Shown here piece after piece: positions 13,951-56,367 of a stretch of DNA of 64,000 nt. Origin of the DNA: Ruditapes philippinarum (lineage: Eukaryota); NCBI RefSeq assembly GCF_026571515.1, contig NW_026860384.1:62001-126000 (forward strand). Reading direction: 5' to 3'. Under the pieces are notes generated by a model. That model saw only the letters and a program-made list of their open reading frames with translations. It was not told the origin of the DNA and did no database searches. Every line of letters begins with the position of its first letter. Within the stretch, counting starts at the first letter, position 1. A program made the translations under genes and the position numbers.

Positions 13951-15213
13951 TTATAATAAGACAAGCACCATAAACAAAAGTGTGGAGATTAAAAACAAAG
14001 ATATGAAAACCAAGAATAGAATTTCATCGATATGGTGAACAATAAGCTTCCTACGCTCGGGGAAACCAATTCTTGTGACCGTCTTTGACTTTGTATCAGT
14101 GCTGTTATGTCGCAGGCTTTCGGTTTTTTGTATGTCTTCATGTACCTCAATTGCTTCAACAGATTTAGAGTTAACAGGTTTTCGTCTCTTGCTAAGATTA
14201 TAACACTGGTTATAGAGGGAAACAATGCTAGAGCTTTGTGAATCGTCGTGAATGTGTGTCGCCCTTATTAGTAAAATAGATACTGATGTTATCACCACGG
14301 CAACTGTCAGTTGATAGCTTATATATATTTGAAGATATGAAATATGTTTAGGAACTCTAGGCATGGACTCACTGACCAAATTCAGCAGCACAACAAAGGT
14401 GAGGAGCAAAGACATACTGTAACTTATTCGTTCTCCACTCGCTACTGGTAACTTGAAACACAACACGATCATAAACGACAAAAGGAAAACGGGAACTATA
14501 ATGTTAAGAACATAAAACAACGAGTGACGTTTAAGAGTCAAAGTTATATCAAGAAATGTTACATATCCATAAATCACTCTTTTCTCAATAATTGATTTTT
14601 CCAAAGCCCATTCACCATTTTCCTTATATAAAACTCTTCTAACTTGATCACGTAAAGCATCAATGAGAACTTCAGTGTCCGGAGTTGATTTTGAAATCAT
14701 GATTGTACAATGTTGAACATCAAATGGGTATTTGGTGATGTCAATATTACAAGATGTACGGATATTTCCTCCTGTATACCATAGTGCATCCCCGTTACTT
14801 TCAACTTTAATTTGTAACATGTCCGCGCGATTTTCTGTCAGGACGTATAATGAGTCAATACTATTACTTGCAATAAGATCGGGTATCCATGCAACTACAG
14901 GTGATATATACATTGTTTTAATCTCACTAAATTCTGATTCATTCCAAACCAAAGTTTCATATTTCCAGTTACACGTTAGAGCAATGTTAGACTGTAAGAC
15001 CTGTTCCTTTTCATCTAATCCTTGAATTGCCTGTAAGCTAACGTCGATTCCTACAATAATTGATTTAGACTGATTAATAACTGGTCTAATTGTTTTGTCA
15101 AAGTTTTCCTCTAGATGTCTATAAAGCCTTTTATATTCCCAAAAAGTATTACCCTGGCCTTTTTCTATCATTATATGACAAATTATACAGAATAAAATAT
15201 ATGTCACTTCCAT
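13951..15213 (-). CDS. Intronless Cys-loop ligand-gated ion channel subunit, nAChR-like non-alpha (copy 1), 420 aa
   Basis: Signal peptide, IRPV, WIPD, Cys-loop CNIDITKYPFDVQHC (C-x13-C), NGEW, LKR before M1, M2 GERISYSMSLLLTFVVLL, four hydrophobic helices. No vicinal Cys in loop C. Uninterrupted ATG-to-stop ORF. Confidence 0.97.
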   Translation of the reverse strand: MEVTYILFCIICHIMIEKGQGNTFWEYKRLYRHLEENFDKTIRPVINQSKSIIVGIDVSLQAIQGLDEKEQVLQSNIALTCNWKYETLVWNESEFSEIKTMYISPVVAWIPDLIASNSIDSLYVLTENRADMLQIKVESNGDALWYTGGNIRTSCNIDITKYPFDVQHCTIMISKSTPDTEVLIDALRDQVRRVLYKENGEWALEKSIIEKRVIYGYVTFLDITLTLKRHSLFYVLNIIVPVFLLSFMIVLCFKLPVASGERISYSMSLLLTFVVLLNLVSESMPRVPKHISYLQIYISYQLTVAVVITSVSILLIRATHIHDDSQSSSIVSLYNQCYNLSKRRKPVNSKSVEAIEVHEDIQKTESLRHNSTDTKSKTVTRIGFPERRKLIVHHIDEILFLVFISLFLISTLLFMVLVLL

Positions 15214-15680
15214 GTTTTCACCAAACGTAAGAAGCAGTTATAAATATCTACTTCTATCAAGCATATAACCGATTTCCTTAATATTTACTTTCATACTGAC
15301 ATTATTGTATAATGTAAATGGATATTCTACGCCACTCTTTCAAAGAATCCACCGTTCGCGATAACACTTTGATTTTCTGTTTTTCAATGTTCAAACGTTA
15401 CTGATATTTTCAATTAGCAGAATGTTATCGATTAACATGATAACGTGAAATAGCTTTTATTGTGATATCCGTACATTTGTAAAGAGTTCCCGCTGTGTAT
15501 TTGATATCATCATCGACAATATAATAAGTTAACGCTTTTTAAAAGCTTTTAATTATACTTTAATCATAAATGATTCTTTACTTCTGTCATCAATATTGAT
15601 TGTATGGTGTAATTTTTATAAACAAGTCATTATATGAAAGCATATATGTACATGTATAACCTTTCATTTTTTAAAGTATG
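15214..15680 (-). promoter_or_regulatory. Conserved 5' flank of the channel genes (putative promoter/5' UTR)
   Basis: Alignable in all three intact copies (also 27400-27750 and 56368-56820), with tatttataa ~27 nt upstream of the ATG. The conservation could simply reflect recent duplication. Confidence 0.3.
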
Positions 15681-16021
15681 TTAGTGAAATGTTAATTAAT
15701 TTAGAAATAATAATTATCATATTAATTGACATTTTTCATTTTCTTAACTTGCCAGAGCAATAAAGGTATATATGGCAGATGACAGACTTGATTTCCATTA
15801 AAGAAAACGATGTTAAACAAAAGTAATTGGGTATGGTCAATGATGGCGTACAAAAGTTGTGATTTAATGTATAATGGCGTATTTTGTGGCGCATTGCGGA
15901 CATGGTTTACATCATTGCATTCCTTTGACTTTTATGTACACATGTACTCATTAAAGATATCAGACTTGAAATATAAATAACCATGCTTTAAAAGTCATCT
16001 TAATCATTTAACTTAAATTCT

Positions 16022-16085
16022 TCACACACACGCACGCGCGCACGCTCTCACACACTTACATACACACACGCGCGAGCGCGCAATA
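16022..16085. repeat. Compound (CA)n/(CG)n microsatellite in duplicated flank module
   Basis: Directly visible; paralogous tracts at ~28270-28360, ~43869-43979 (inverted) and ~58657-58746. Confidence 0.9.
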
Positions 16086-19000
16086 CTTCTTCATATTTCA
16101 TATATCTTTATCTAACCTTACAAGAGGTCACAGCTGTACTTCTGGGGTATTAACACACAGAATCAAAGAATAAAATATCTTAAGAGAATGGAAAGTTGTC
16201 TTTAAATCAGGTATCCGTCAGTGTAACATCGTAATATATCTTCAATAATTATTTTCTTAAGACACAAGTCTCTAACGGATTGAACTGGAAGCTATATTTT
16301 TCCACTGCTTTTGTGACGAATGCTCCACTGCTGTAGCGTTTGACTCATCGACTCTACAAAAGCTATGGCCAGTATGATCATTGGCTAAAATAAGCTGACA
16401 TTGACCTTTATGTCATCGATATTTCTGGTAAAAAAATCGTTTGAACTTTTCTAAAATCAACAATAACGGGTTACAATAGTACTTGGATAAACTCATATTG
16501 TCATGTATAGTTTCAACATTAAATGCCCTTGATAGTATTTATTTTTACTAAATTTGCCAGACTTTTGTAATTTATAGACTTACATGATTCGTATTTGAAC
16601 TAACTATACCTAGGATTAAATTTCAAGTGGAGGAAGTTTTCAGGTTCGATAATGACCTTTGAAGGACCTTGACCTTTAGAGTAAAGTCATTAAATTTTCA
16701 TAAAATTGGTCAAATCTGAATTATTAATGGATGGATTTGATTTACTTACGTAGCCGAAAATAAGGTTATCTGTACACTTCTATGAATAAAAGCTTGTGTA
16801 GCGTATAACGAAAACATGTACCAAAAATAATTCGTACTTGCTTGAATTCATTTAAATTTTAATGTTTATATTGTTTTTGATGATGAATGCCAAATAACAA
16901 AATTCAGTTTTAAATAGTATGTAGATAACGTTTTGCCGATATATTTAGAACTGAAATACTGAAAGACGTTCGGAAGAGAAGGAATACAGGGAAGGGCCCA
17001 CGATAATGTTGTAAGAACTTTTGGCTCAACCCTTTTGTATGTACACTTCATTAAATCAAATTCCGTGATCATATTTCAGTTCAGGGAAAGTGTGGGCATT
17101 TTGCTGATTTGTTTCTTTCTTGCGGGGCGGGAGTATTGTGACATACTATATCTCAGAGATTACAGACCCCATAAAGTAATGCTATACTTTACATAACTCT
17201 TTCTTTCTTTATCTATATAACTGTCCGTTGGCCTTTAAATAATATAATATCCACGATGACGTAAGCGAGCACTATTACGTTTTTGTCAAAACGCTTAAAT
17301 TTAGCGGCTTTAACCGCTAGGAATATTTTACAGTATCTGGAAAAAAGTGATCCCTCGGAAGCATTAAAAACAGCAAAATTACATGATAATTGCAGACTCG
17401 GTTTGATTAAATCTATACATGAGGGATAATAAAAAATTGCAACGTCCATCACGCCCCGTAGCACCGGCGTGAGTTGTACTCAATTCTCAACACTAAAAGT
17501 GCTGAAGTCAATACATTTTGTTATTTAAACTATGATACAAAACATATCATAAAGTACTTCCGACATCATAGCATAAATGTGACCTCACAGTCAACCCCGA
17601 ACTTACATTTAAGACCTAAGCATTCGGTATTGGTCTGTTAAATGTTTGCGTGCTGACTGATCGTTTACGATAATTTTACATCATTTCATCAATTATAACA
17701 ACAACGAAATCATAATAATCAATTTAATGTAAATTCTGACAATCACAAAAGATGACAGTACAAATAGATATCATGTTATTTTACTCTTTCACATCGAATA
17801 AAATAGAAAACCCTTTAATACAATAGAATTTGAAAATAAAGGGATGTTAAATTTATTTTTAATAATGTATTCTCAACGGATTATATCAAACAGCAGCATT
17901 TAATTATTTACACAATGAAAATGAAAAATGATCAATGGCTTAAGTTGTGTCGGGGGATGCGTTATGTGAACGTCGCATTGCCTTATTGATATTTGTTCAC
18001 ATTTTTAATGTACTCTAGAATAAATAGAAAATGAAATATGAAACATGGAATTGAATATTTGAAAAGCAAAAGCAAAGAAATATTCACTTAAGGATGTTAT
18101 CGAACGGAGCAAAAAGGCAATCCATGGAGAACTTTAATAAGAACATTATGAGCGAAGAAACAATATAAGTATCTCAGGAATTAATATTGTATAATAAAAA
18201 TAAACAGCAATAAATTTGTGTTTCAAGGTTACATACATACATTTATATTGACCTTTAATACATATTTCCAGGAAAAGCGCCCGATAAAAGTGGACTATAT
18301 TTCACGATTTACAATAAACAAAATTTTCAAACCTTATTTCACGAATAACAAGAGACAAAAAAATCAAACCCTATAAGCGTTGAGTTAGGCTGAAATCTTT
18401 GCGGACGAGAATTTATTAATACTTGTTCATGGAAGGTACTGGAATGTGCAAATTACCGGCCACGCCCTCTAGCACTGGCTTTAGTAGTATTCAACATTTA
18501 AATATGAAAGTGGTGAAAATTTGTATTTCAAAACATCCGCAGATGAAAGTTTGATCCGAAGGGAAGGACGGTCATCTAACAAGTTTGGCTTATGGCTTTC
18601 TTTGAACTTTATGTTGTATTTTTTTAACATAATCCAGTCACAGTTTCCACTAAAAATGGTGGCATAAAGGTACATGCAGTTATTGTATGCTTTTTATACA
18701 AGATGTGTAGAAAGTACAGAAATAGAAACAGGTTTTTTTATTTTATCTAACTTCTAAGCAACCCATTTATGTCTGCCAATCTAAAATCATCGATTTACGA
18801 GTCGTACTCCGATTTTGGTAGGTCACTAAATTGAATAATTTCATTCATCTGTATGAAAGAAATTGTGCTCTTTATCACTACATTGTTTGTATTGACATGA
18901 TAGAGATAGCTGTATACAATCATCAAAAGAATGTCAAACAAGGGTCAACCGAAGCATGATTTTTTTCGCAATTCGAAATTGATAGTTTTAAATGCTAGAT

Positions 19001-20649
19001 AAACATTTAAAAAAACATTACCAGTATATTAAACTTGCTTGTTTGTTGTTTTTTCCATTTTCTTCACCACTTTTCCGAAAACTATAGACATCTGTGCGAA
19101 TGACAAGTGCGCACTCTTTAAAATTTCAATCTAATTTAGAAGCATTTTTTTTCATCAGTTATCATTTAAGCATTTTCTAAATCCTTCAGTGAAGATATAT
19201 TTTCTTTAAATGCATTTGATGAAAAATGAATCCAAATAATAAATTTTGCCTGTCATCATGTAACATCATATGAGCGGGGTTTTATATACAAAAGGGAAGT
19301 ATTAATTTAGTACTGTACAACTTGAAAGTGAATAAAGTAGAGTTATTGTGAGTTTGTGAGTTTGCACATTCATTTGTCCATAATGTAATGGTTAATATAA
19401 CTATCATTCTGGTCTACGAGTATGTGTTTTGTAATAAGGTTTTCTAGTTACAAATATAAATATATGGTTACATTTCGTGTAGAGCAATTGGCAACAATAG
19501 CTTTCAGAACTGACTATTTATGAATGTATAATCAGCCAATTATTTGCGCCGTGGAATACAGAATTGAATTCTATTCATTATAGCTACTGTGCCGCTATGA
19601 TATTGAATTGCCTCACAAGATGTCTATCTTCTTTCTTTCTTTCATTATGTTTTTTTAAATTTTACATTAGATGCAAATGAAATGGACTATAAAACTAGTT
19701 TTGTTTTAATATCTAATTATTCCAATATAATGGTAATAATGATTTTTTGAAAATTCTGTGTAGTGTGCAGGATGTAGTAGTCGATGAACTTGTATAGCAC
19801 ATGAGTATTTCGTGCCGACTAAAGTAATGTTGAAACAATTTGTGTACATGTATACATTCAGTTTAGTATTCAGTATAATGTTGCACCAACTTTCTACATT
19901 TAAAACAAAAGGGAACAAAGTGAAATGTGAAGTTAATAGAAAATAACACAACACTTAAAATCTTAACAAGAGAATACTTCAGCATATTCTTATTTGATTA
20001 TCAATAATATAGAAATACTTTTAAGGAAATCCGAAACTGTGGAATTTATATAGATGAGTCTGACCTGAATTTAGTGGCCTCATCTCTTTCAATCATTAAG
20101 ATTTCATGACAACTAAATCTAATAAACACTAACCTTTGTGAGAGAGGTCAAAATTAACAAGTTTCATTGGATAACAAATAAATAACATATCATTTAAATC
20201 AAGTTTGGCGGGATTTGTAAAAAGTATTCACTTCGGTCAGGGAAATTGTTGAAGAAGGATGGTCTTCCTTAACAGAATTGAACTCGTCTATATTTACAGT
20301 GAGGTAAATCCCAGGTTGTCCCTGTCCTGTCCTTTGACCTATTTAATTTGGTTATGTAAAATTATGGTTAAATTCATTTTAATCCAGATGTTTTCCATAC
20401 CATTCTGAATCAGCTCTTTCTCAGCTGAATTGAGTTTTTATATTTTCAAATATAACTTCATAAGTAAATATTTATCTAAATATGAAATTAAGTACAATTA
20501 ATTTGCTTTTGTTTGCTTATGCTTGTGTATTTGTAGGACACCTTTTTTATTACAACTATTAAATTTGAAGTGAACCTACAAACAATAAAATATAATTATC
20601 AACTGCGACACCCTCAGAATTATTTATTCCTGAATCAACCAACTGTCAC

Positions 20650-22290
20650 ACAAATAACAAAAATATTTAATTACTATAGTAGCAAATCAAATTAATTGAC
20701 GTTATAGGCATTGTAAATTTATTTAATATATTCTATTCTTTAATTTATTAAAACAACCATGAAATGTTTATAAAAACATTAATCAGAACTGACATGGCGG
20801 AAAAAAACGTGTTTAGCATAACATTAAATCATTAAATCATTGATTCCAATTTTGTTTGCTTTGTTTAATTATGAATTGTATATTTTAATGGTGGAAATGA
20901 TATGAGAGGTATCCAAGCCTTTCCTGATATTGTTGAAGTATTTTTGCTTATGTTTGCAGATGATATAGCATAACTACAGAGACGTTAGGACTATTGTCGT
21001 TGTTCAGAAGCAATTAAACTTTTTACAAAAAATTTGCATTAGTAGTAAACTTGTTGTTGATATTGAAAAAAAAAACTAAAGTACTTGTATTTAAAAGAAG
21101 TGGTCATTTATCTAGAAGAGAAATACGGAAGTATAATAGTAACAAACTGGAAATTGAAGAATCCAAATAATTAATAGTGTTATATGAACAGTGTCTCAGT
21201 TAGAAAATGTAATATTAAATCATTATATTAATTATTTTGATAAGACTACCTACGGAACAATATTTTTCTGTTATATGGTTGAAAAGGGTAGACATTTTAA
21301 TATTGATAGAGAAAACCTTCATTGTTTCTACTATGAATCAATGTTAGAAGATGAATATCACTTTCTTATCGTATGTTCTATATATGTAAATTTACGTTCA
21401 CTTTTTATACCATTGTATTACTCTCAATACCCGACTGTTGAAAAGTTCTACTCTTTGATGGCTACTGAAGGCGAGTCATTGATAGTAATGTTGCTATGTA
21501 TATTTATTATACATTTAAAGAAAGATATTATTTCCTCAAATGTTTTTAATAATATAGATTCAGATTGTACTGTATTATTATATTAGAAATTTAACCATTA
21601 CTATATATCCAGTAATGCTAATTTGTATTGTATATTATATGTACTGTGTATGGGCCGGAGGCCTCTATTGAATTGAATTAAATCACACATTGTTTAATGT
21701 TCTATAGTTATCTTGTATCATAGTTTGGGGACATTTCCTGTTGAAAATTGTCAAAGTTAAATCGTATACATAAACATGCACAATGCTTTATCTGGAGTGC
21801 AATTATTAGTTACCCGCACTCCAAAGCATCCCCATTGATTGGCTGATTTTTTCTGGGGTTTATTTATTGTGACGGCAGAGAAATAGAAATATTATATTCA
21901 GATGCTCGTTAATTGGTTACTTTTTTACTGGGGTTTCATATTGTGACAACATCAAAAATACGGAAAAAGTAATTTATACTCGGGGCTACGCTCCCTCGTA
22001 CAAATCAGATTGCCTCGTGTTTTGATGCTCTTTCTATTACTTTAAATGGAAAGAAAATCTTAAACGGTATATTATGGTGTATAATAAACGTTTTGTCGGA
22101 CTGGTATTTAAATAATGTTATATAATAAATTTTGGTAAATTTGGCACACTACTGGCAGACATGTTTTGTAAGAGGTTAAATTCAGGGTTGTTATAATTTT
22201 TCTAATCCTTCGAGATCAGAGATCATTGATTTCATTGATATGTAGCCCTAGGAAGCTTAAATTCAGGTATAACTTTTTGGTAATTTTTTA
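20650..22290 (+). repeat. Diverged paralogue of the 10500-12345 flank block, including LINE remnant copy 3 (~20870-21679)
   Basis: Same sequence blocks (FADD motif, EDEYHFLIVC, gggccggaggcct, tctggagtgc...gcactcc) in the same position relative to channel copy 2. Confidence 0.9.
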
Positions 22291-26136: not shown

Positions 26137-27399
26137 TTATAATAAGACAAGCATCATGAACAAAAGTGTGGAGATTAAAAACAAAGATATGAAAACCAAG
26201 AATAGAATATCATCGATATGGTGAACAATAAGCTTCCTACGCTCGGGGGAACCAATTCCTGTTAACGTCTTTGACTTTGTTTCAGTGTTGTTATGTTGCG
26301 GGCTTTCGGTTTTTCGTATGTCTTCATTTTCTTCTATTGCTTCAACAGGTCTAGAGGTAACAAGTTTTCGTCTCTTACTAAGATTATAACAGTGGTTATA
26401 GAGGGAAACAATGGTAGAGCTTTGTGGATCGTCATTTATGTGTATCGCCCTTACTAATAAAATAGATACGGATGTTATCACCACGGCAATTGTCAGTTGA
26501 TAGCTTATATAAATTTGAAGATATGAAATATGTTTAGGAACTCTTGGCATGGACTCACTGAACAAATTCAGCAGCACAACAAAGGTGAGGAGCAAAGACA
26601 TACTGTAACTTATTCGTTCTCCACTCCCTACTGGTAACTTGAAACACAACACGATCATAAACGACAACAGGAAAACGGGAACTATAATGTTAAGAACATA
26701 AAACAACGAGTGACGTTTAAGAGTCAAAGTTATATCAAGAAATGTTATATATATATGAATCACTCTTTTCTCAATAATTGATTTTTCCAAAGCCCATTCA
26801 CCATTTTCCTTATATAAAACTCTTATAACTTGATCACGTAAAGCATCAATGAGAACTTCAGTGTCCGGAGTAGTTTTTGAAATCACGATTGTACAATGTT
26901 GAACGTCAAATGGGTATTTGGTGATGTCAATATCACAAGATGTACGGATATTTCCTCCTGTATACCATAGTGCATCACCGTTACTTTCAACTTTAATATG
27001 TGACATGTCCGCGCGATTTTCTGTCAGGACGTATAATGAGTCAATACTATTACCTGCAATAACATCGGGTATCCATGCATCTACAGGTGATATATACATT
27101 GTTTTAATATCACTAAATTCTGATTCATTCCAAACCAAAGTTTCATATTTCCAGTTACACGTTAGAACAATGGTAGACAGTAACACCTGTTCCTTTTCAT
27201 CTAATTCTTGAATTGCCTGTAAGTTAACATCGATCCCTACAATAACTGACTTAGACTGATTAATAACTGGTCTAATGGTTTTGTCAAAGTTTTCCTCTAG
27301 ATGTCCATAAAGTCTTTTATATTCCCAAAATGTATTACCCTGGCCATTTTCTATCATTATATGACAAACTACACAGAAGAAAATATATCCAACTTCCAT
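26137..27399 (-). CDS. Intronless nAChR-like Cys-loop channel subunit (copy 2), 420 aa
   Basis: About 88% identical to copy 1 by hand count (~50 differences). Cys-loop CDIDITKYPFDVQHC, M2 GERISYSMSLLLTF, intact ORF. Confidence 0.97.
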   Translation of the reverse strand: MEVGYIFFCVVCHIMIENGQGNTFWEYKRLYGHLEENFDKTIRPVINQSKSVIVGIDVNLQAIQELDEKEQVLLSTIVLTCNWKYETLVWNESEFSDIKTMYISPVDAWIPDVIAGNSIDSLYVLTENRADMSHIKVESNGDALWYTGGNIRTSCDIDITKYPFDVQHCTIVISKTTPDTEVLIDALRDQVIRVLYKENGEWALEKSIIEKRVIHIYITFLDITLTLKRHSLFYVLNIIVPVFLLSFMIVLCFKLPVGSGERISYSMSLLLTFVVLLNLFSESMPRVPKHISYLQIYISYQLTIAVVITSVSILLVRAIHINDDPQSSTIVSLYNHCYNLSKRRKLVTSRPVEAIEENEDIRKTESPQHNNTETKSKTLTGIGSPERRKLIVHHIDDILFLVFISLFLISTLLFMMLVLL

Positions 27400-28397
27400 G
27401 TTTTCACCAAAAGTAAGAAGCAGTTATAAATATTTGCTTTTAAAAAACATATAACATATTTCCTCTCCGTAAAATTTACTTTCCTTCTGACATTATTGTA
27501 TAATGTTAATGGATATTCTACGTCACTTTTTCAAAGGATCCGCTTTTAATTATAACACTTTGATTTTCTGTTTTTCAAGAGTCCCCGCTGTGTATTTAAT
27601 ATTATCATCGACAATATAGCTAGTAAACGCTTTTAAAATGCTTTTAATCATACTTTAAATTTTATATTTTATTTTACTTCTGTCATCATCAGTCATTTTT
27701 ATAAACAAGTCATGAAATTAAAGCATATATGTACATGTATAACCTTTCCGTTTTTGAAGATAATTATTGCTTTTACAATAAAAATCCTTTTCTGGTTTCT
27801 TTGGTGGCAAAGAGGTGACATTTGATATTATCTTATGGCCACAACTTACTGTTTGAAGCCGCGACTTGTTTTAGCCAATGAAAATGGTTGTATTATCTTT
27901 GGCGGAGACATCGACATAAACTAAGTTATATATTAGTGAAATGTTATTTATTTAGAAATAATCATATTAATTGACATTTTTCATATTCTAAACCTGCCAG
28001 AGCAATAAAGGTATATTTGGCAGATAACTGACTTGATTTCCATTAAAGAAAACCATGTTAAACAAAAGTAATTGGGTGTGGTCAATGATGACGTACAAAG
28101 GTTGTGATTTATTATAATGGTGTATTTTGTGCCGCGTGGCGGACATGGTTTTTATCATTGCATTCCTTTGACTTAAATTATGTATACATGTACTCATTTA
28201 AGATATCAGACTTGAAATATAAATAACCATGCTTTAAAAGTCATCTTAATTATTTTTTTTTAATTCTTTACACACACACACACACGCGCGCGCATGCACT
28301 CACGCAAGCACGCATGCACAAACAGGCAATCACGCGCACTCACACACAGACAAACACACATACTTTGAAACAAACGAGCGTTAGATTAAGTAATTAA

Positions 28398-30371
28398 GGC
28401 GACAACGGACACGTTTCGTTGTACTACCATAAATGTCATTTAAACCAACTTATTTTTGAGTAAAAATTGTTATTTATTTAAATTTTGTGCATTAAATATC
28501 TTTGATCTTCATAAAAAATATCATATTTGAAAAATGCCTTTGTAAATTATTGATAAAAATTAAATTCTATAATTTTAAATCGTCATATCAAAGTCATTTT
28601 TTATTTATTTATTTTTTTATCATCAAACTCTTGGAGTATAAACATAATTATTACAATATCTGGGGAACCCGTGTCCCAGGTTTTTTTTATTTTTTCTCAA
28701 AAAATATAACGTTACGTCAATTAATTTATGCGACTTTTTTCACCATACATACGAAAATTAAAGATAATTAAGTCGCTGATTGGGCGAACAAAATTCCCTG
28801 AGACGGTTCCCTCCGTAATTGAATTCCCTTTCATGTGCTTTAAACTGCATGTACATTGCTTGTTTATTAAAAAAAAGTTGTGCTGATTCAAAGTTAGTCC
28901 GACGCGCATCAAACGAAGTGTCATAAATCGGCTGTTCTCTCTCAGACCCCTACGTTTTCCGTTAAATTATTGTATAATTTAATCATCAAGTATGTATGTA
29001 ATATTTCTTACTTTTATGTAAATATTACATACTTAACGATTAACGCAAATAAAAACATTTGTCGTGCTTTGAGGGTACCGATGTGTTCAAAAATGATAGG
29101 GTACCTGTGATATGAAAATTCAAATGAAGAGAGGTAGCCCGTGCCGCTGCAAAACCGAAAGTAGGGTGTTTTAATGAATTTTACATTTATTTTTGACACT
29201 ATACTGCCATTTGTCCGAAGATGATATGTATATGAACATATTAAATATGTATGATGCATATATAATCAAGCCACAGGTTCATTTCAGCCCGAAACAATAT
29301 GTCGAGGTGATGGGCGAGACAAGACATGTCGATTTTTGTAGCTATTGTGAAGTTGCGGTGCATGAAAATCGGGCACATGACAAATCAGCACATAAATAAA
29401 ATATTCTAGTGTTCCGTGGTATACATCTTTTCTATGTGTCATACCTTGTTTCCTTTTTACAATGAAATTTTACTGTATTGTTATCCATCGCTGGTTTGTT
29501 TTTAGCAGAGAATAACCTGTGCATGTTCAAAGAGGGTACCGTTTGAGCAGATTTCGCAAAGAGGGTACCGATATGGATATGCACCGTGTATAAATGCTTG
29601 ACATAATTTAATAGAAATAAAAGGTATTTTTATCGATCAATATGATCTGACGTTCTTGACTTTTATTATTCAAAATTCTATCTATGCAAGACATACATAG
29701 ATTCAGTTTCTTCTTGGACATACAATAAATTGTGTTCGATTTACTAGTGAACAATATATTCAAACCGTTCACTGAAAATATATTTTCTTATCTTTTTCAT
29801 TGATTCATAAAGAATAAATCATCCGAAGACTATCGTAATTTTTTTTTAGAAATTTGTAAGGGACACCTAATCACCTGTCATATATAGGCGTTCACATAAA
29901 AGTTTGACATTGTTAGAAAAAACGAGGTTGCATGCAAAGCAAGCTCTTGAATCCGTAGTTAAGTTCATAAACTCAATATAATGTCTCTCAGATTACGAGA
30001 TAAATACATTTCATACATTATGGATAAAGGCAGCTACATTGTTTTAACCATCCCCATGGGCGTGCGATTTACGGCTATGCTAAATTATTTGTGACATCTT
30101 GGCCGACAATTTCTTAATTTATAAAATGACTACTTAAATGGTAGACGATACAATGTTGAAATATTCACGTTATTGATAATGGACAGGTTACGTGCATAGC
30201 GGATAAAAATGGTATAGGTATCGTTTTAAAACGTTTAAAAACATATTTTCTGGACTAACTGCTTCCAAAATTAAATCACGAAATTCAATGTATTCAGAAA
30301 AAGTTAATAAATCTACTTAGCAAAAAATCTCAGTTTAGGTATTTTTAGTGATAATTGACTCCGTTTTCACC
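28398..30371 (+). mobile_element. Non-autonomous TTAA-flanked (Kolobok-like) DNA transposon, copy A (1974 bp)
   Basis: TTAA at 28394-28397 and 30372-30375; short TIRs ggcgacaacgga / tccgttttcacc. GG termini with TTAA fit Kolobok better than piggyBac. Confidence 0.8.
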
Positions 30372-30375
30372 TTAA

Positions 30376-32351
30376 GGTGACAACGGAGTCAATTATCACT
30401 GAAAATACCTAAAATGAGATTTTTTGCTTACTAGATTTATCAATCTTTTCTGAACACATTCGTGATTTAATTTTGGAAGCAGTTAGTCCAAAAAATGTGT
30501 TTTTAAACATTTAAAAACGGTACATGTACCATTTTTATCTGCTATTCGCGTAACCTGTCAATTATCGATAACGCTCCGCCCCCTGTTGAGGCATCAATGA
30601 GGGAAATCGGTAGTTCCATATATCCGTAAATTTCCGGTCCATACTGGTCCATACTACTCGTAATTCATGTATTGTACAAATACCGTACATCTTTTATGAA
30701 TATCGTCTACCTTTTATTTAGCATTTTTTATAAAATAAGAAATTGTCGACCAATGTACGTAACAAAATGTATGAAACATAAATAATTAAGCATAGCGGCA
30801 AATCGCACGACCACGGGGTTGATTAAAAATATAGTTGCTAAAATATCCATAATGTGTGAAAATAATTTGTCTGTCCCGTTAATCTGATAGATATTACATT
30901 GAGTTTATGGACTTTTGTACGGATTCAACGGCATGCTTTACATTCAACCCCGTTTTCTAACAATGTCAAGTAAAACAACAACAAAAACAGACAAACATTT
31001 TTTATGTGAACGCCTATATGACTTGTTGTAAGGTGTCCCTGACAAATTTCTAAACCATTTTAGATTGTGTAAGGATGATTATTTCTCTATGAATCAATAA
31101 AAAAAGATATTAATATATATTATCAGTGAATGCTTTGAATAAATTGTTCGCCAGTAAATCGAACACAGTACTAATAAACCTGGGACAAAGTATGGGATTT
31201 ATTGTATATCCCAGTAGAAACTGGATGTAGATGATTTTCATGATAATAGAAGTCAAGAAGGTCAGATCATAATGATCGAGTGATACCTTTTATATCTATT
31301 AAAATATGTCAAGCATTTATATCAATTTGGAAATAAAATATATAATATCTCGTTCTTATTTGTACATCTACCATGGACTTTAAAAAGACCGTCTGAAGCT
31401 CAGTTTTTTGTTATTTTAATTTATATTTTAACGGAATTTCATACACGAATACACAGACAGAGTGACACTGTTATAATATAATAATAATGCTGATGATAAT
31501 AATAATAAACTTCAAAAGTGAAACAATTAAATACCCCGCTAGCGGTGCGCAAATACGTTCCATTTCCCCCCCACCGAGTGCCTCAAATTTTACCGAAAGT
31601 CACGTGACATGTGCGACCGATACCAGACGGACAGTAAATCACGTTAAGATTTGAATAAATTTCTGTTATAAACTGATATTAATCAGCAACTTTTAATTGG
31701 TCAGATGTCACTGGGTCATAAAATGTTGTTAGAGTAAGTTACCGCAACTTGTGACCCTCTCTGTTGCGATATTTGTGTATTATGCAATTATTAAGCCTGA
31801 AACGTAGGGGTCCGAGAGAGAACAGCCGATTTATGACACTTCGTTTGATGCGGGTCGGACTAACTTTGAATCGGCATAACTTTTTTAATAATCAAACAAT
31901 TAACATGCGGTTTAAAGCACATGAAAGGGAATTTATTTACGGAGGGAACCGTGTCAGGGATTTTTGTTTGCTCAATCAGCGACTTAATTATCTTTAATTA
32001 CGTAATATGTATGGTGAAAAAAGTCGCACAAAATGTTTGACGTTACGTAATATTTTTTTTAGAAAAGATAGAAAAAAATTTGAGACACGGTTCCCCAGAT
32101 ATTATAAGTATGTTTATTTTCCAAAAGTTTGATGACAAAAAAAATAAAAAATGACTTTGATATGACGATTTAAAATTTTAGGATTTTTATTAAAAACCAA
32201 TCATTTACAAAGGCATTTTTTCAAATATGTTATTTTTTATGATGATCAACGACATTTAATGCACAAAGATTAAATAAATAACAATTACTACTAAAATAAG
32301 TTGGTTTAAATGACATTTATGTGAGTACCACGGAAAGTGTCTGTTGTCACC
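30376..32351 (-). mobile_element. Non-autonomous TTAA-flanked (Kolobok-like) DNA transposon, copy B, inverted (1976 bp)
   Basis: Starts ggtgacaacgga after the shared TTAA and ends tctgttgtcacc + TTAA (32352-32355). Both arms are reverse complements of the copy A arms. Confidence 0.8.
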
Positions 32352-32488
32352 TTAAGTAATTTAATGCTCATTTTATTCCGATTAAACTATAGCATGATTC
32401 TATAGCACCATTCTTGATGCCTTTCATTATGTACCATGTAATGAAAAAACAACGTCATTTGTCCTGGAAAAATGAATATCTTCCTGTA

Positions 32489-37630: not shown

Positions 37631-38014
37631 ATGCATTGAAATCACAAGCTTTATTATATAAGTGATGACAGTATTGAAGTTTGTTAAAAGTATGGTTAAA
37701 AGCATTTTAAAAGCATTTGTGTTTCTATTTGTATTGTAATTTGCTATGAAAGGCATACACTAGATAACGGATGTTCATAACAAGGACCATCGTCACACTA
37801 TTAACTATATCAGTAATTTTAATTGCCCACCATTTATAGTTAGTCTTAAACATTCAAACAGACAAAAAATCGATCTATTTGCATTGCTTTTGAAAAGAAT
37901 GAAAATACAATCTGATTATGTAAGTTACTTTAAAAGAAAGAAAATCAATTGTGTTACATGTTTTATCTATGAATATCTTAATAACTGCTTCTAAAAAGTT
38001 TGAATATTTAAGTG

Positions 38015-38965
38015 TATGTAGTTTGTCATAAAATGATGGGAAAGGGCCAGGGTAATACATTTTGGGAATATAAAAAAACTTTATAGACATCTAGAGGTAA
38101 ACTTTGACAAAACAATTAGACCAGTCATTTATCAGTCTTAGTCAATTATTGTAGGAATCGACTTTAGCCTACAGGCAATTCAAGGATTAGATGAAAAGGA
38201 ACAGGTATTACAGTCTACCATTGCTCTAACGTGTTACTGGAAATATGAAACTTAGGTTTGGAATGAATCAGAATTTAGTGAGATTAAAACAATGTATGTA
38301 TCACCTGTTGATGCATGGATACCCGATTTTATAGCGAGAAATAGTATTAACTCTTTTTTTTTTGACAGAAAATCGGGCGGAAATGTTACAAGTAACGGGG
38401 ATGCACTATGGTATACAGGAGGAAATATCCGTACATCCTGTAACATTGAAATCAAGTGACCAAATGGAAGGACTTTTATATAGGGAAAATGGTGATTGGG
38501 TTTTGGAAAATACAATTATTGAGAAAAGAGTAATATATAGATATGTTACATTTCTTGATATAACTTTGACTCTTAAACGTCGCTCGTTGCTTAATGTTCT
38601 TAACATTATAATTCCTGTTTTCCTTTCGTCGTTTATGATCGTGTTGTGTTTCAATATACCAGTAGCGAGTGGGGAACGAATAAGTTACAGTATGTCTTTG
38701 CTCCTCACCTTTGTTGTGCTGCTGAATTTGGTCAGTGAGTCCATGCCTAGAGTTCCTAAATATATATCATATCTTCAAATATATATATAAAACTTTTTAA
38801 TCAATGTTATAACCTTAGAAAAAGAAGGAATCATAATGAGTCTACACCTCTTCAAGAACAGGAAGTAAATGAAAACGAACGACAAAACGATATCCGAAAT
38901 CATGAGCACTCTAATACACAGTCAAAGTCCGACATAAAACCTGGTTTCCCGACACGGCGACCATC
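38015..38965 (+). pseudogene. Inverted nAChR-like pseudogene (fourth cluster member)
   Basis: Homologous from CH..GQGNTFWEYK onward. Start codon region lost, +1 frameshift in an A-run, in-frame TAG stops (~38138, ~38253), deletion of the second half of the Cys-loop and loop B, most of M3 deleted, M4 absent. Confidence 0.93.
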
Positions 38966-41089
38966 TGTAGCTGGTTCCCGACACGGCGACCAGCTTTAGC
39001 TTTTTATTGGTAAGATAATCAAGTTCCTTTATATTTCAACTGGCTTGAATGTTAAAGTGTTGTTTCTCTCTATGAAGAATATATGTTTAAAACTCATTTG
39101 TTTTTGTTTCCTGTAGTCAGTCAATTAATCAATTAATTAATCAATCAAATATTCATCAATTTATCAACTAAAGGATGTGTAACAAATACAAACTATACAA
39201 TTGATGATTTGTTTGACACGCCTTAAGTTTTTTTAAGCTTAATATCAATCTGCAAATACATTAGTGGTTATATGATAACCTTTTAGTTGACTGTAAAGTT
39301 GAAAGATATGTAAATTTTAAGCTCAAATACTTTATGCAATTGTTTTAAAAGTTACAAAGGTCTGAACTCCATAGGATTTAGAACCGTTTTTGCATAAGCT
39401 AATTTGATAAATATAACTTTTCTTTCAATAAAATGGTTAATAATTGTGTAAAACATACAACTTTGGTTTCAAATGTTTTTTTATTAATAATATTACTTAT
39501 TAGTGAATTAATTTTAAAATATTTAAATTAAAACTAAAATTTCATAAAATATTCCTTTTTCTCAAGATAATGTTAAATAACGTTAGGAACCATCTTGCAC
39601 TAACCCCTTCATTATTATCTATAAATACATGCATTTGAATGTTTTACATATAAGATAAAATTGGAGCATTATACCTTTTTTAAGAAATTGTTACAATTGT
39701 AATAGTGTGTGTTTAGTTAAGACTTGTATTTTTGACTAAATTACGCATTGGGGATTTTCTGTGCGCAAATGGCACAAATTTTTCTCAAGTTTGATATTCT
39801 TCAAACTTTGTGGTTGGAGGCATGCCGATTTAAATACAGTTTATTCCAATCAAATGGTATAAAGTTTTTTAATGTAAATCTGGGACTTAAAATTGTTTGA
39901 TTAACATACTTATTGCCTGTTTTGAAAAATCTTTGTTCCAGAAGAAATTGTACTTACCAGAACATTCACCAAAAATTTTTCATCATTGAATTTTATAAGG
40001 AACTTAAATTTTGATACTACTTTTTAATATATAACATTTATTTTAAATTTAGTTAGATAACATATTATAAATTGTTCCCTTGGTAGAGAAAGTATCCCTG
40101 ATGTGCCAAAAAATGTCCATTTTTCCGGCATAAAATCTTTTAAAGCATAAAATTGATTTATAAACATTCATTGTGCTTTTATGCAAATATATCTCCAAAT
40201 ATTTTCGAATGAAACAAATCTCCCACAGCTCGCATGATTCTTTTTAAAGAAGCAAACTTGTTTTATACACAGATCAGGTTTATATCAGAATCAAAATATC
40301 CCTTACTCATCTCAACTCGATTCATATTTTACACAGACCACACTTTCTTAACACGTCCATTTATATATATTGATAATTGAAACATACATTTACATACCAC
40401 AAAGCCATGCCTTAATTGGAACTACAGAATACTACTTCATATCTTAAAATTATACATGATTAGTAAAAAGTTAACTCATATTCAGTTACTTTAGCCAAGA
40501 TAATAAGAATAACTTATAAATCATTGCAAGAAATTTGATATTGGAAAATAAATCATACATGTCTTTGCTTTGCTCAATATAGTTTCTAAAGGAAAACTTA
40601 TTCCCCTTGCAATCAAAGGCATATTAATTTCATGCATAGAAAATTATGGTAAATGAATTTAACCGGAGAGGTTGTATTCAATCATACAACTTCAACGTTA
40701 TCTACCCAAGTTTTAAAGATGATACATGTATGTCTATCAAATGCACGGTTCGACTCAATTTTATGCGTATTATCTATTCTGTCGACCTTTTGTTCTAGAT
40801 TTTGATATTAACCATTAATGTTTTCATTTTATTTACTTTCTGATCAGTTGCCGATAAACTTTTTAATATCTTTATCCGTTGTTGGATATTACTTACGTAC
40901 CTTCCACGTATTGCTTGAACGACGCTTGCATTTGCATAATTATTGTACAAGACTTGAAATTATATAGAAGTGATAACATCTTAGATATTTTACTTCTGTT
41001 TACCTAGTTTCTTCAAATAACATATGTTACACTGGTTTTTCTAGCGAATAGATCACTGTACGATAAAATCTATTTAGTTATAAATGACT

Positions 41090-42224: not shown

Positions 42225-43665
42225 CCGAACGTCTTTCAGTATTTCAATTCTAAATATATCGGCAAAACGTTATCTACATACTATTTAAAAACGAATTATG
42301 TTACATGTGTACCATCTGATTTGGCATTCATCATCTAAAACAATAAACATTAAGGTTAAAATGAATTCAAGCAAGTACGAATTATATTTGGTACGTGTTG
42401 GCGATTTCGTTATTCGCTACATAGGCTTTTATTCATAGAATTGTACTGATAACCTTATTTTCAGATACGTAAATAAATCAAATCCATTCATTGATAATAC
42501 AGATTTTAGCCAATTTTGTAAAAATTCAATGACTTTACTCTAAAGGTCAATGTTCTTCAAAGGTCATTATCAAACCTGAAAACTTCCTCCACTTGAAATT
42601 TTATCCTATGTTTAGTAAGTTCAAATACGAATCAAGTAAGTCAGTCTGGCAAATTTAGTAAAATTAAATACTATCAAGGGCATTTAATGTTGAAACTATA
42701 CATGACAATATGAGTTTTTCCAAGTACTATTGTAACCCGTAATTGTTGATTTTAGAAAAGTTTAAACGATTTTTACGATTTTTATTTTAGCCAATGATCA
42801 TACTAGCCATAGCTTTTGTAGAGTCGATAAGTCAAACGCTACAGCAGTGGAGCATTCGTCAAAAAAGCAGTGGAAAAAACTAGCATTAGCTTTTGTAGAG
42901 TCGATGAGTCAAACGCTACACCGAACGTCTTTCAGTATTTCAGTTCTAAATATATTGGCAAAACGTTATCTACATACTATTTAAAAACGAATTATGTTAC
43001 CATCTTATTTGGCATTCATCATCTAAAACAATAAACATTAAGGTTAAAATGAATTCAAGCAAGTACGAATTATTTTTGGTACGTGTTGGCGATTTCGTTA
43101 TTCGCTACATAGGCTTTTATTCATAGAATTGTACTGATAACCTTATTTTCAGATACGTAAATAAATCAAATCCATTCATTGATAATACAGATTTGGCCAA
43201 TTTTGTAAAAATTCAATGACTTTACTCTAAAGGTCAATGTTCTTCAAAGGTCATTATCAAACCTGAAAACTTCCTCCACTTGAAATTTTATCCTAGGTAT
43301 AGTAAGTTCAAATACGAATCAAGTAAGTACAAAGTCTGGCAAATTTAGTAAAATTAAATACTATCAAGGGCATTTAATGTTGAAACTATACATGACAATA
43401 TGAGTTTTTCCAAGTACTATTGTAACCCGTAATTGTTGATTTTAGAAAAGTTTAAACGATTTTTACCAGATGTAAATGTCAATGTCAGCTTATTTTAGCC
43501 AATGATCATACTAGCCATAGCTTTTGTAGAGTCGATAAGTCAAACGCTACAGCAGTGGAGCATTCGTCAAAAAAGCAGTGGAAAAAACTAGCCATAGCTT
43601 TTGTAGAGTCGATGAGTCAAACGCTACAGCAGTGGAGCATTCGTCAAAAAAAGCAGTGGAAAAAT
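42225..43665. repeat. 696-bp direct duplication containing an older 77-bp tandem duplication
   Basis: ccgaacgtctttcagtatttc at 42225 and 42921; 77-bp period at 42803/42880 and 43511/43588. Confidence 0.9.
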
Positions 43666-51660: not shown

Positions 51661-52277
51661 GACAAGTACTTGCAGACAACAACACACTTACATGTTGAGA
51701 AGTTCACATGCCTTATCGACATAATAAAACCATGTTAACAGAATTGCACGCTATTGTGAGAAGTTAAGATGGCCTTTTAACACAATAAAATGGTATTTAA
51801 CAATTCAACGAGTCATGTAGACATCATCAGTGAAGTTTTAACAATTTAACAATGCTGTTTCACATATAAACCGAAAATTTGAGAATCTCATATATTCATG
51901 TAACATATTAATACGAAGTCTGGGGAAGTTCACATGTTTATTTAACATAATTAGACATAATGTAAACAATATCATATGAATAGACATATTCAAACTGTAG
52001 TTAAAAAAATCAGCATTGTCGTTTAACATATAAATAGGAAGTATTGAGAAGTTCACATGTTCTTTTAACATGATAAGATGTTATGTTAACAATATAACAT
52101 GGCAAAAGACATGTTCAAACTGTAGTTTGACAAGTCAACAGTGTCGTTTAACATATTAATACGGAGTCTTGCGAAGTTCTAATGTTATTTAAACATAATA
52201 AGATGTTATGTTAACTATATCACATGGCAAAAAGACATGGTCAAACTGTAATTTGACAAGTCAACATTGTCGTTTAA

Positions 52278-53074: not shown

Positions 53075-53694
53075 TTTACATATCAATACGGAGTCTTGAG
53101 AAGTTCACATGTTCTTTTTACATAATGAAACATAGTGTTAACAACATCACATGACACATAGTCATTTACCAATGGTAGTTAGGCAAGTCAACATTGTCGT
53201 TTAACATATAGGTATGAAGCATTGAGAACTTTCGTTTAACATATAGGTATGAAGCATTGAGAATTTATCTTCTTCTTTTAACATAATAAGACATTATGTT
53301 AACAATATCATATGAAACTTAGACCTTTTCAAATTGAACCTAAACACGTCAACATTGTCATTTAACATATAAATGTGAAGTCTTGAGAAGTTCATTTGTT
53401 CTCTAAACACAATAAAACGATACGTTGACAATATCACATGACACACAATAAGACGTTATTTTAACAATATCACATGGCACATTGACATATTGAAATGGTA
53501 GCTAAACAAGTCAACATTGCCGTTTAACATATCATTACGGAGACCTGAGAAGTTGACATGTTCTTTTAACATAATAAGACATTATTTTAACAATAACACA
53601 TGGCTGTGGCGTTCCATAGACATGGCATTCTAAACGTGTTCAGCATAACATTAAATCATTATATTAGTGAGTCCAATTTTGTTTGCTTTGTTTT

Positions 53695-54045
53695 TCAATT
53701 CATTGTATATCTTAATGGTGGAAATGATATAAGAGGTATCCAAGTCTTTCCTGATATTGTTGAAGTATTTTTACTTATGTTTGCATAGATACTATTGTCA
53801 GTCTACAGAAACAATTAAACTTGCTACAAAAATGTTGTATTAATAGTAAACTTTGGAAAAAAAACTGAGGTGCTTGCATTTAAAAGAAGTGGTCATTTAT
53901 CTAGAAGAGGAACATGGAAGTATAATGGTAACCGAGTAGAATTTGTAAGCGGTTTCACATATGTTGGTAAATATTTTGGTGACATATTATCTTCATACAT
54001 AATGGCTGAGGCTATGATCACTAAAGCGTAAAAGGTACTTATGTG
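53695..54045 (+). mobile_element. LINE RT remnant, copy 4 (retains RT motif deleted in the other copies)
   Basis: GIQVFPDIVEVFLLMFA*... then FKRSGHLSREE.WKYNGNRVEFVSGFTYVGKYF. Confidence 0.75.
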
Positions 54046-54169
54046 TGTTACATGTGCTTAAATTTTTATAGATAATATAAATAAAATCCTGAAGCAGTAT
54101 TTTGACTTGCATTTGATTTTCTCCTCCAATATATCATTCAATCATTAAAGCATCTTTGAAGCTGTAATT

Positions 54170-54700
54170 AGACTATGTAGCTGTAGGCCGTAGCATAGTA
54201 TATAGGATGCCGTTTCAGGTAACATTCTATTTATCTATCTCTCTAACTCTGCACTTTACACCATATTCTCGTGTTATACTAAATAAATTTGACTGTATCG
54301 GCTAATCGAAGTGTACAATACCGATGAGACTACAATGTAATCATTGAAGTGTATATTCGATTGGGAATACATTTGAATAATTGCAAAATATAAATTGTTT
54401 TATATGTATGTCGCAGTCCACTCTAATTATAAGGGAAAGGTGCTGCTAAGAGGTTCTTGGCTTGAGGGTTGCTGTAAAAAAATAGAGACGCGCTCTCAGA
54501 AAATATTTATTATCAAACAATATGAAGTCTGGCTCGCGTCATGAAAATCTTCAGTACAAGTGCGCATGCGTGAAGGTAATACAATATTTAGATTTGAGGC
54601 CCGTACCAGTGTTCAGTACATATTTGGTAATAAATGAATGAATGAAGAAATGAATGGATGAGTAAATGAATAAAAGGATGAGTGGATGAAATATAGGAAA
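54170..54700 (+). mobile_element. SINE/LINE-type 3' end with aataaa(tgaa)n tail
   Basis: ...agtacaagtgcgcatgcgtgaaggtaatacaatatttagatttgaggcccgtaccagtg...ggtaataaatgaatgaatgaa. Resembles, from memory, a bivalve SINE family. Confidence 0.55.
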
Positions 54701-55104
54701 AGGGACACAAATATTAGGATTTCACAAGATATATATATACAGTAACAGATACAACAGCTTTGATATGGATATGTAAATAACATAATCTACGGTCTACAAT
54801 ACGGACATACATGGACAAATAGCATATAACATTAACACATCAATATGACCCTGTGACATGTATTTTCTAGGTAATTTTTATAGCCACGTGTTTGATAAAC
54901 ATGTTTCGACAATATTGTATGTTAATATATTAATCTGCTTTGTAAACAATGCATTTGAAGATGTTTTTCTATTATTCTTTGTGCATACTATATATGTCGT
55001 TAAAGTTATATAATAAATCATGCCATTTTATCTGATCATTTCACTATAATGTTGTCATTGGTTTAGAAAACATATTTCAAAAGTCTCTTTCAATTAATTA
55101 TTAG

Positions 55105-56367
55105 TTATAGTAAGACAAGAACCATAAACAAAAGCGTGGAGATTACAAACAAAGACACGAAAACAAAGAATAGAAGATTATCGATATGGTGAACAAAAAA
55201 CTTCCTACGCTCGGGGGAACCAGGTCTTGTGACCGTCTTTGACTTTGTATCAGTGTTGCTATGTTTTGGGCTTTCGGTTTTTCGTATGTCTTCATTTACC
55301 TCTATTGCTTCAACAGGTCTAGAGGTAACAAGTTTTCGCCTCTTGCTAAGATTATAGCACTGGCTGTAGACAGAAACAAGGCTAGAGCTTAGTGAATCGT
55401 CGTGAATATGTGTCGCCCTTATTAGTAAAATAGATACGGATGTTATTACCACGGCAACTGTCAGTTGATAGCTTATATATATTTGAAGATAAGATATATG
55501 CTTAGGAACCCGAGGCATGGAGTCACTGACCAAATTCAGCAGCACAACAAAGGTGAGGAGCAAAGAGATACTGTAACTTATTCGTTCCCCACTCGCTACT
55601 GGTATCTTGAAACACAATACGATCATAAATGACAAAAGGAAAACGGGAACTATAATGTTAAGAACATAAAACAACGAGTGACGTTTAAGAGTCAAAGTTA
55701 TATCAAGAAATGTTGTATATCCAAAAATCACTCTTTTCTCAATAATTGATTTTTCCAAAGCCCATTCACCATTTTCCTTATATAAAACTCTTATTACTTG
55801 ATCACGTAAAGCATCAATGTGAACTTCAGTGTCCGGAGTTGTTTTTGAAATCACAATTGTACAATGTTGAACATCAAATGGGTATTTGGTGATGCCAACA
55901 TTACAAGATGTACGGATATTTCCTCCTGTATACCATTGTGCGTCACCGTTACTTTCAACTTTAATTTGTAACATGTCCGCGCGATTTTCTGTCAGGACGT
56001 ATAATGAGTCAATACTATTGCCTGCAATAAGATCGGGTATCCATGCGTCTACAGGTGATATATACATTGTTTTAATCTCACTAAATTCTGATTCATTCCA
56101 AACTAAAGTTTCATATTTCCAGTTACACGTTAGAGCAATTGAAGACTGTAAGACCTGTTCCTTTTCATCTAATCCTTGAATTGCCTGTAAGTTAAAGTCG
56201 ATTCCTACAATAATTGATTTAGACTGATTAATGACTGGTCTAATTGTTTTGTCAAAGTTTTCCTCTAGATGTCTATAAAGTCTTTTATATTCCCAAAATG
56301 TATTACCCTGGCCATTTTCTATCATTAAAAGACAAACTACACAGAATAAGATATATGTCACTTCCAT
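55105..56367 (-). CDS. Intronless nAChR-like Cys-loop channel subunit (copy 3), 420 aa
   Basis: Intact ORF, Cys-loop CNVGITKYPFDVQHC, M2 GERISYSISLLLTF, same length as copies 1 and 2. Confidence 0.97.
   Translation of the reverse strand: MEVTYILFCVVCLLMIENGQGNTFWEYKRLYRHLEENFDKTIRPVINQSKSIIVGIDFNLQAIQGLDEKEQVLQSSIALTCNWKYETLVWNESEFSEIKTMYISPVDAWIPDLIAGNSIDSLYVLTENRADMLQIKVESNGDAQWYTGGNIRTSCNVGITKYPFDVQHCTIVISKTTPDTEVHIDALRDQVIRVLYKENGEWALEKSIIEKRVIFGYTTFLDITLTLKRHSLFYVLNIIVPVFLLSFMIVLCFKIPVASGERISYSISLLLTFVVLLNLVSDSMPRVPKHISYLQIYISYQLTVAVVITSVSILLIRATHIHDDSLSSSLVSVYSQCYNLSKRRKLVTSRPVEAIEVNEDIRKTESPKHSNTDTKSKTVTRPGSPERRKFFVHHIDNLLFFVFVSLFVISTLLFMVLVLL

Follow-up and report, generated by a model that had tools for sequence, protein, structure and literature searches.

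A tandem array of intronless nicotinic-receptor-like genes in the clam Ruditapes philippinarum that may encode orphan-ligand cation-type channel subunits

Bivalve genomes carry 99-217 nicotinic acetylcholine receptor (nAChR) genes, often intronless and in tandem, of which few retain the binding residues (PMC6896357), and an nAChR expansion is common to Ruditapes philippinarum and Mercenaria mercenaria (PMC11592408). The chemotactile receptors of cephalopods are reported to be intronless (PMC13174522); they are themselves insensitive to acetylcholine (ACh) and have a remodelled pocket. Alpo4 of Alvinella pompejana, a lophotrochozoan nAChR-like protein from an expanded family, responds neither to ACh nor to serotonin and keeps its aromatic cage (F103, W159, Y199, Y205 and W65; PMC10338036). 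The general phenomenon is already in the literature, as is the idea that such proteins have alternative ligands or chemosensory functions (PMC6896357, PMC13174522, PMC10338036), and a bivalve chemoreceptor repertoire has yet to be characterised (PMC11682238). Bivalves hold at least 100 nicotinic-like genes that are orphan in both ligand and role. To our knowledge, none of the bivalve members of the expansion has a known ligand. The array described here adds little as a discovery, because the intronless paralogues of this genome have generally lost the ACh site and both the phenomenon and the alternative-ligand idea have been published; it is compact, recent, intact, constrained and divergent mostly in its binding-site loops, and therefore makes a convenient set for deorphanisation.

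The window, i.e. the whole stretch of 64,000 nucleotides of R. philippinarum DNA that was analysed (contig NW_026860384.1, positions 62,001 to 126,000), contains no N runs. The three intact, single-exon paralogues of 420 amino acids and the pseudogene proposed in the first-pass annotation were recovered (Table 1). Each ORF runs uninterrupted from ATG to stop, from the signal peptide through M4, and the three proteins are 87-89% identical. The g3 product is an exact match to an NCBI protein record, and this identity supports a single coding exon for g3. Four or more in-frame stops interrupt the first 160 codons of the pseudogene, which also shows frameshifts and two internal deletions (~96 and ~92 nt) and lacks M4; its intracellular loop is nearest to that of a repeat-bearing array copy beyond the window. 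An array of three intact copies and one pseudogene, as first annotated, is thus correct for the window, but the true array is larger: outside the window the contig carries further intact copies at 42607, 129730 and 136136 together with another pseudogene at 55235-56692 (contig coordinates), which brings the total to six intact copies plus two pseudogenes spread over ~95 kb of a single contig. In the tree the closest neighbour of g2 is the copy at 42607. The flanks of the array copies are colinear with 80-91% identity (self-blastn), a pattern that demonstrates tandem segmental duplication.

Table 1. Array features in the window (positions are those of the window)
Feature	Position	Strand	Description	Evidence
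g1	13951..15213	-	intact 420-aa single-exon nAChR-like subunit	ORF, PF02931 + PF02932, alpha7 alignment, AF2 model
g2	26137..27399	-	intact 420-aa paralogue	ORF, PF02931 + PF02932, alignment
g3	55105..56367	-	intact 420-aa paralogue	ORF, PF02931 + PF02932, alignment, NCBI record
Inverted pseudogene	~38004..39001	+		tblastn, blastn, translation
Block upstream of g1 ATG	15214..15405	-	conserved	alignment of six copies, self-blastn
Block upstream of g2	27400..27590	-	conserved	alignment
Block upstream of g3	56368..56560	-	conserved	alignment

All three window genes matched PF02931 (115-122 bits, E 1e-33 to 3e-35; cut-off 26) and PF02932 (37-41 bits; cut-off 28.1), and an ESM Atlas search returned generic Neur_chan clusters only. 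The AF2 model of g1 (mean pLDDT 80.3) consists of a beta-sandwich and four TM helices (residues 232-254, 260-283, 293-320 and 384-419); the best structural matches of this fold are the muscle, alpha4beta2 and alpha7 nAChRs (Z 29-31), and human alpha7 is the top match by sequence among solved structures (E 2e-42). As the first-pass annotation had stated, the alignments show that the Cys-loop (C155-C169, C-x13-C with YPFD) and a cation-type M2 are retained, the latter with GER at -1', Ser 2', Leu 9' and Glu or Asp at 20' (Asp in g3) and without a Pro-Ala-Arg motif. GER is found in every array copy, and the residues of gating and pore, namely the C-x13-C Cys-loop, the pre-M1 Arg, the M2-M3 Pro and GE[K/R], do not vary among 39 relatives. 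The profiles, Cys-loop, four TM helices and cation-type M2 place the window genes among the Cys-loop pentameric ligand-gated ion channels, in the nicotinic-like branch, and together with the selection analysis below support that the array genes are intact, constrained, cation-type Cys-loop subunits.

For the ACh site, residues were checked by HMMER alignment to human alpha7 and with MAFFT against a canonical alpha7-like protein of a hemichordate. In g1, g2 and g3, respectively, the loop D Trp position holds Ala, Val and Ala, the loop A Tyr position Ser, Gly and Gly, and the loop B Trp position Ser, Thr and Thr; loop C is 4-7 residues shorter with no vicinal CC, and of its Tyr pair only the first position is still Tyr or Phe, and that in just two genes. 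These replacements agree in full with those first read by eye. What marks an ACh-binding subunit, namely the loop C Cys pair, the principal-face aromatics and the complementary-face loop D Trp, is lacking in the window genes, and none of the six array copies has the loop D Trp, the loop A Tyr, the loop B Trp or the vicinal Cys pair. The alignments support the prediction that classical ACh binding would be impossible on either face of the array subunits. Like human alpha7, the clam genes have the Cys-loop, GE[K/R], Leu 9' and an acidic ring at 20', but they are without W55, Y93, W149 and C190-C191, their loop C is shorter and their intracellular loop is much reduced. They resemble Alpo4 (PDB 8bx5) at 26% identity (Z 26.0, E 8.6e-35); the aromatic cage present in Alpo4 is, however, lost. 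A conserved Lys before the loop B position was considered as a ligand contact and rejected, since it marks a large clade and is also present where the loop B Trp is retained (P0013); its position suggests that it may instead be a partner of the WxPD Asp.

The ACh box is lost in intronless paralogues throughout the genome, not in the array alone. Specifically, among 71 intact single-exon paralogues recovered from the same genome, none keeps the loop D Trp (0/71) or the vicinal Cys pair (0/71), 4/71 keep the loop A Tyr, 25/71 the loop B Trp and 71/71 GE[K/R]. The first-pass annotation had proposed the array as a candidate chemosensory receptor family; as a family it is not distinctive, all 71 sampled paralogues being without the loop D Trp and the Cys pair. 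Its statement that bivalves have large, often intronless nAChR expansions is in line with the literature (PMC6896357). The array shares with the expansion described by Jiao et al. 2019 (PMC6896357) an intronless coding region, tandem arrays, lineage-specific duplication and eroded ACh residues; the window genes have a single coding exon, belong to a set of eight copies on one contig and fall in a lineage-specific clade. Within the expansion at large, the venerid subfamily has a residue pattern with small residues in loops A, B and D, the conserved Lys before loop B and a short loop C; as far as we could find, the bivalve nAChR literature holds no individual description of this subfamily or its residue pattern. 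The phylogeny gave a monophyletic array (SH-aLRT 100) nested among venerid orthologues: its sister is one ENA sequence, followed by Mercenaria, which carries intact orthologues, and a clade of 21 rows including Mactra lacks the box throughout. The tree marks the array as an expansion specific to this species; its orthologues are in Mercenaria, and Mactra holds remoter relatives that are likewise box-less.

The array is under purifying selection. Pairwise dN/dS between its copies is 0.24-0.63; the regional values are 0.17 for M1-M3, 0.34 for the extracellular domain (ECD) and 0.85 for the intracellular domain (ICD). The binding-site loops have a pooled dN/dS of 0.66 and 34 N:12 S changes versus 22:26 elsewhere in the ECD; the Fisher p value of 0.007 is only suggestive given that 11 paralogue groups were examined for such enrichment, and the other groups pooled gave an odds ratio of 1.26. 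Between Ruditapes and Mercenaria, identity is 53-58% in the binding loops versus 65-71% in the scaffold. The seemingly faster evolution of the loops fits partial relaxation of a disused pocket equally well as ligand tuning.

On balance we lean towards reading the array as a recent tandem expansion, specific to this species, that encodes orphan-ligand, cation-type channel subunits within the venerid subfamily of the bivalve expansion. Gene birth and death would have shaped it inside this venerid-clam subfamily of intronless nicotinic-receptor-like genes. Each gene is predicted to give a complete subunit, in which a signal peptide precedes an extracellular beta-sandwich that bears the Cys-loop, followed by M1-M4 with a short intracellular loop. 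In the most likely mechanism the subunits would form pentamers, either by themselves or together with other members of the array, and a small non-cholinergic molecule would bind the remodelled inter-subunit pocket, open the channel and depolarise the cell. Differences between the paralogues lie chiefly in loops D, F and C, and their ligand tuning therefore probably differs too.

A special case of this orphan-ligand model, and the reading of the first-pass annotation, is that the products are environment-facing chemoreceptors in sensory cells of the siphon, mantle edge, gill or palps that sense waterborne or contact chemicals, in parallel with cephalopods. We regard this as rather unlikely, though a chemosensory role as such is conceivable. 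A clustered, single-exon, lineage-specific expansion with pseudogenes is what many chemoreceptor families look like, replacements concentrate in the binding loops, nAChR expression is highest in gill among studied bivalves (PMC6896357), and a role of this kind has been suggested before for divergent clades in molluscs (PMC13174522). However, the same features occur in all 71 sampled paralogues, RNA run X23 gave no reads of the array genes, and some bivalve nAChR genes are tied to development, stress and immunity (PMC6896357). With CRT1 and CRB1 (PDB 9e6b, 8eiz) the clam genes share nAChR descent, intronless coding, the pentameric-channel fold (Z 22.6-24.0) and, as predicted from their sequences, ACh insensitivity with a remodelled pocket, but structural alignment gives 18-22% identity with squid CRB1 and octopus CRT1 versus 26% with alpha7 and Alpo4, and there were no chemotactile receptors among the 60 best PDB sequence matches. 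These comparisons support that the array genes probably have no specific relation to cephalopod chemotactile receptors, and any sensory role would therefore be parallel. The wider proposal that bivalve arrays are ionotropic chemoreceptors of epithelia exposed to the water, which evolved from nicotinic receptors separately from those of cephalopods and whose recent paralogues are tuned to different ligands by replacements in loops D, F and C, we consider doubtful.

The loss of ACh contacts on both faces next to a conserved pore and conserved coupling elements, and the lower constraint on the binding loops than on the scaffold, would also fit non-binding accessory subunits in heteropentamers with canonical ACh sites, like vertebrate beta1, alpha5 and beta3. 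This we think improbable, since there would be no precedent for dozens of fast-duplicating accessory subunits, Ruditapes and Mercenaria still have the loops in conserved form, and binding of ligand in the manner of a beta subunit is ruled out once the complementary-face Trp is lost.

That the genes are silent or decaying duplicates, presently functionless, is in our view very unlikely. The two pseudogenes, the dN/dS of 0.85 in the ICD and the absence of array reads among the 1.1 billion letters of run X23 point that way; against it stand the six copies with full ORFs at dS 0.09-0.30, the strong constraint on M1-M3, the intact Mercenaria orthologues and the ~190 nt 5' of the ATG that are conserved in 6/6 intact copies. 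As to other reads, run X21, labelled RNA-seq, gave 44, of which 36 match only partly, with loose ends starting at GATC, and some fall in intergenic bins; for these reasons it was rejected as transcription, and we did not count it because it looks like a proximity-ligation or DNA library. In runs X1 and X2, of unspecified library type, low-depth contigs cover coding and downstream non-coding sequence alike, and there were no RNA-type entries among the listed holders of array sequence. Finally, gating by ACh or choline through a non-canonical pocket, suggested by the nearest solved relatives being ACh receptors, is hardly credible with every cation-pi and loop C determinant missing on both faces.

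The ~190-nt upstream block (Table 1) is a possible proximal promoter or 5' UTR. It holds a TATA-like element ~33 nt before the ATG, and also a TGACGTA motif.

Each of the three intact nAChR-like channel genes in the window (g1, g2 and g3; see the table) is an ATG-to-stop ORF of exactly 420 aa, with 87-89% protein and 89-92% DNA identity among them, and Pfam identifies in each product both the neurotransmitter-gated channel ligand-binding domain (E 1e-33 to 3e-35) and the transmembrane region, above the curated cut-offs. NCBI lists a protein with exactly the sequence of the g3 product, and an independent gene model thus agrees with a single coding exon. The first-pass annotation, which listed three intact single-exon paralogues and a pseudogene, is confirmed on both points; the fourth copy carries in-frame stops, frameshifts and two internal deletions (about 96 and 92 nt), and lacks M4. 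The window has no N runs.

Features of the array and its surroundings (window coordinates unless contig position is stated)
Feature	Position	Strand
g1	13951-15213	minus
Lys codon before the loop B Trp position (K175 of g1)	14689-14691	minus
g2	26137-27399	minus
g3	55105-56367	minus
Fourth copy, pseudogene	about 38004-39001	plus (opposite to g1-g3)
549-aa copy, outside the window	contig position about 136136-137785	minus
2.4-kb direct tandem duplication, downstream of g1	6963-9323 and 9335-11718	
Pieces related to the 2.4-kb duplication, downstream of g2	20648-22187	
Inverted and direct repeat pairs between genes	28385-28978 / 31779-32365 and 42225-43628	
Transposon-type ORF	59326-60435	plus
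Transposon-type ORF	1031-1975	minus

The window covers positions 62001-126000 of a contig from a 1.4-Gb genome, and the array runs beyond it: six copies are intact and two are pseudogenes, within a span of about 95 kb. Around the copies the flanking DNA aligns colinearly (80-91% identity) and is broken by repeats, which points to tandem segmental duplication followed by insertions. Upstream of the ATG, all six intact copies share a conserved stretch of about 190 nt. Among named proteins the closest come from Ruditapes philippinarum (92% identity), followed by Mercenaria and Mactra. The most divergent intact copy (549 aa) has an intracellular loop in which a 10-aa unit (consensus GSPTRRPSVA) is repeated in tandem about 13 times; the repeats contain many RRPS and SP motifs resembling kinase sites. 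The other array copies have a single such unit.

Residues were checked in two alignments, one by HMMER to human alpha7, which is the top match among solved relatives (E 2e-42), and one by MAFFT that includes an alpha7-like protein from a hemichordate in which the canonical ACh-binding box is complete. The loss of the box noted in the first pass holds at all four loops: in g1/g2/g3 the loop D Trp is A/V/A, the loop A Tyr S/G/G and the loop B Trp S/T/T, while loop C is 4-7 residues shorter and has no vicinal Cys pair. The genes retain the C-x13-C Cys-loop with YPFD, the pre-M1 Arg, the M2-M3 Pro and, as also noted earlier, a cation-type M2 (GER at -1', Ser 2', Leu 9', Glu/Asp 20'). An AlphaFold2 model (mean pLDDT 80.3) has the expected beta-sandwich and four helices, with muscle, alpha4beta2 and alpha7 nicotinic receptors as top structural matches. 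The earlier observation is thus accurate in detail. The Lys directly preceding the position of the loop B Trp (motif S/G/T-K) is kept across the whole venerid clade and in several neighbouring clades of the genome's expansion, with or without the Trp; this Lys could form a pair with the WxPD Asp.

The loss of the ACh site is not special to this array. A search of the genome returned at least 102 matches, mostly uninterrupted, and the 90 loci fetched yielded 71 intact single-exon ORFs, which were scored by alignment to the canonical reference. None of these 71 paralogues keeps the loop D Trp or the vicinal Cys pair, four keep the loop A Tyr and 25 the loop B Trp; GE[K/R] in M2 is present in all. 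A maximum-likelihood tree places the six array copies together in a single clade (SH-aLRT 100), its sister being an unnamed ENA sequence and then two Mercenaria proteins, which identifies the array as a species-specific expansion. The box is absent throughout a 21-row clade that includes Mactra proteins, and the loss is therefore older than the duplications that built the array.

Bivalves have 99-217 nAChR genes, many of them intronless and in tandem through retroposition and subsequent tandem duplication; of 33 alpha-type genes in oyster just 13 keep the principal binding residues, gill is the site of strongest expression, and certain genes are responsive to stress or infection (Jiao et al. 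2019, PMC6896357). A neuronal acetylcholine receptor expansion is common to R. philippinarum and M. mercenaria (PMC11592408). The novelty is accordingly modest, the array adding to this known intronless expansion, while the observation itself is sound. The best-supported reading is that its genes are predicted functional, cation-selective pentameric-channel subunits of the expansion without classical ACh use. Most likely the channels would be gated by some non-cholinergic ligand, with recent paralogues diverging chiefly in the binding loops. Alpo4, a lophotrochozoan nAChR-like orphan, does not respond to ACh (PMC10338036).

A chemosensory role, as first proposed, would be a possible but unsupported special case of gating by a non-cholinergic ligand. 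The MolluscaGenes preprint describes molluscan clades whose binding residues are substituted, as well as a clade including bivalves that resembles cephalopod chemotactile receptors (CRs), and explicitly puts forward ionotropic chemosensation as a hypothesis (PMC13174522). In an all-against-representatives structural search, human alpha7 (Z 29.4, 26% identity) and Alvinella Alpo4 (Z 26.0, 26%) ranked above squid CRB1 (Z 24.0, 18%) and octopus CRT1 (Z 22.6, 22%), and no CR was among the best 60 sequence matches to solved structures. Judged by these structural-alignment identities and solved-structure matches, the clam genes show no particular closeness to the receptors of cephalopods; any sensory role would thus be a parallel derivation, as the first-pass annotation had suggested.

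One rival reading is that the products are non-binding accessory subunits. Of the replacements in the extracellular domain, a disproportionate share falls in the six binding-site loops (by minimum event counts, 34 N:12 S vs 22:26 elsewhere, Fisher p = 0.007; pooled dN/dS 0.66 vs 0.19), with most of the excess in loops D, F and C, where counts are small. For ten other paralogue groups pooled, the odds ratio for the same enrichment is 1.26. The enrichment is only suggestive, and partial relaxation would account for it as well as ligand tuning would.

The other rival, that the genes are silent duplicates, is touched by the transcript searches: none of the listed runs that contain the sequence is recorded as RNA, and one RNA run gave no matching reads. 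Two contig runs of unrecorded library type cover coding and non-coding sequence alike at low depth. A public run labelled transcriptomic RNA-seq (X21) gave 44 reads, mostly partial, for 12951-17000, but was rejected as expression evidence since unmatched ends start at GATC and some reads are intergenic, as in a proximity-ligation (Hi-C) or DNA library; its RNA label is not a safe basis for calling expression. On the other side, the copies compared pairwise give dN/dS of 0.24-0.63 (dS 0.09-0.30) and constraint tracks protein architecture (M1-M3, 0.17; extracellular domain, 0.34; M4, 0.48; intracellular loop, 0.85). The binding loops are still 53-58% identical to those of Mercenaria orthologues (scaffold, 65-71%), which counts against pure neutrality.

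The two units of the 2.4-kb duplication downstream of g1 are 97% identical, and the inverted and direct repeat pairs between the genes 85-95%. Of the transposon-type ORFs, the one at 59326-60435 (369 aa) encodes an integrase core domain of retroviral type (PF00665, E 2e-12), and the one at 1031-1975 (314 aa) has a weak tyrosine-recombinase match under the Pfam cut-off.
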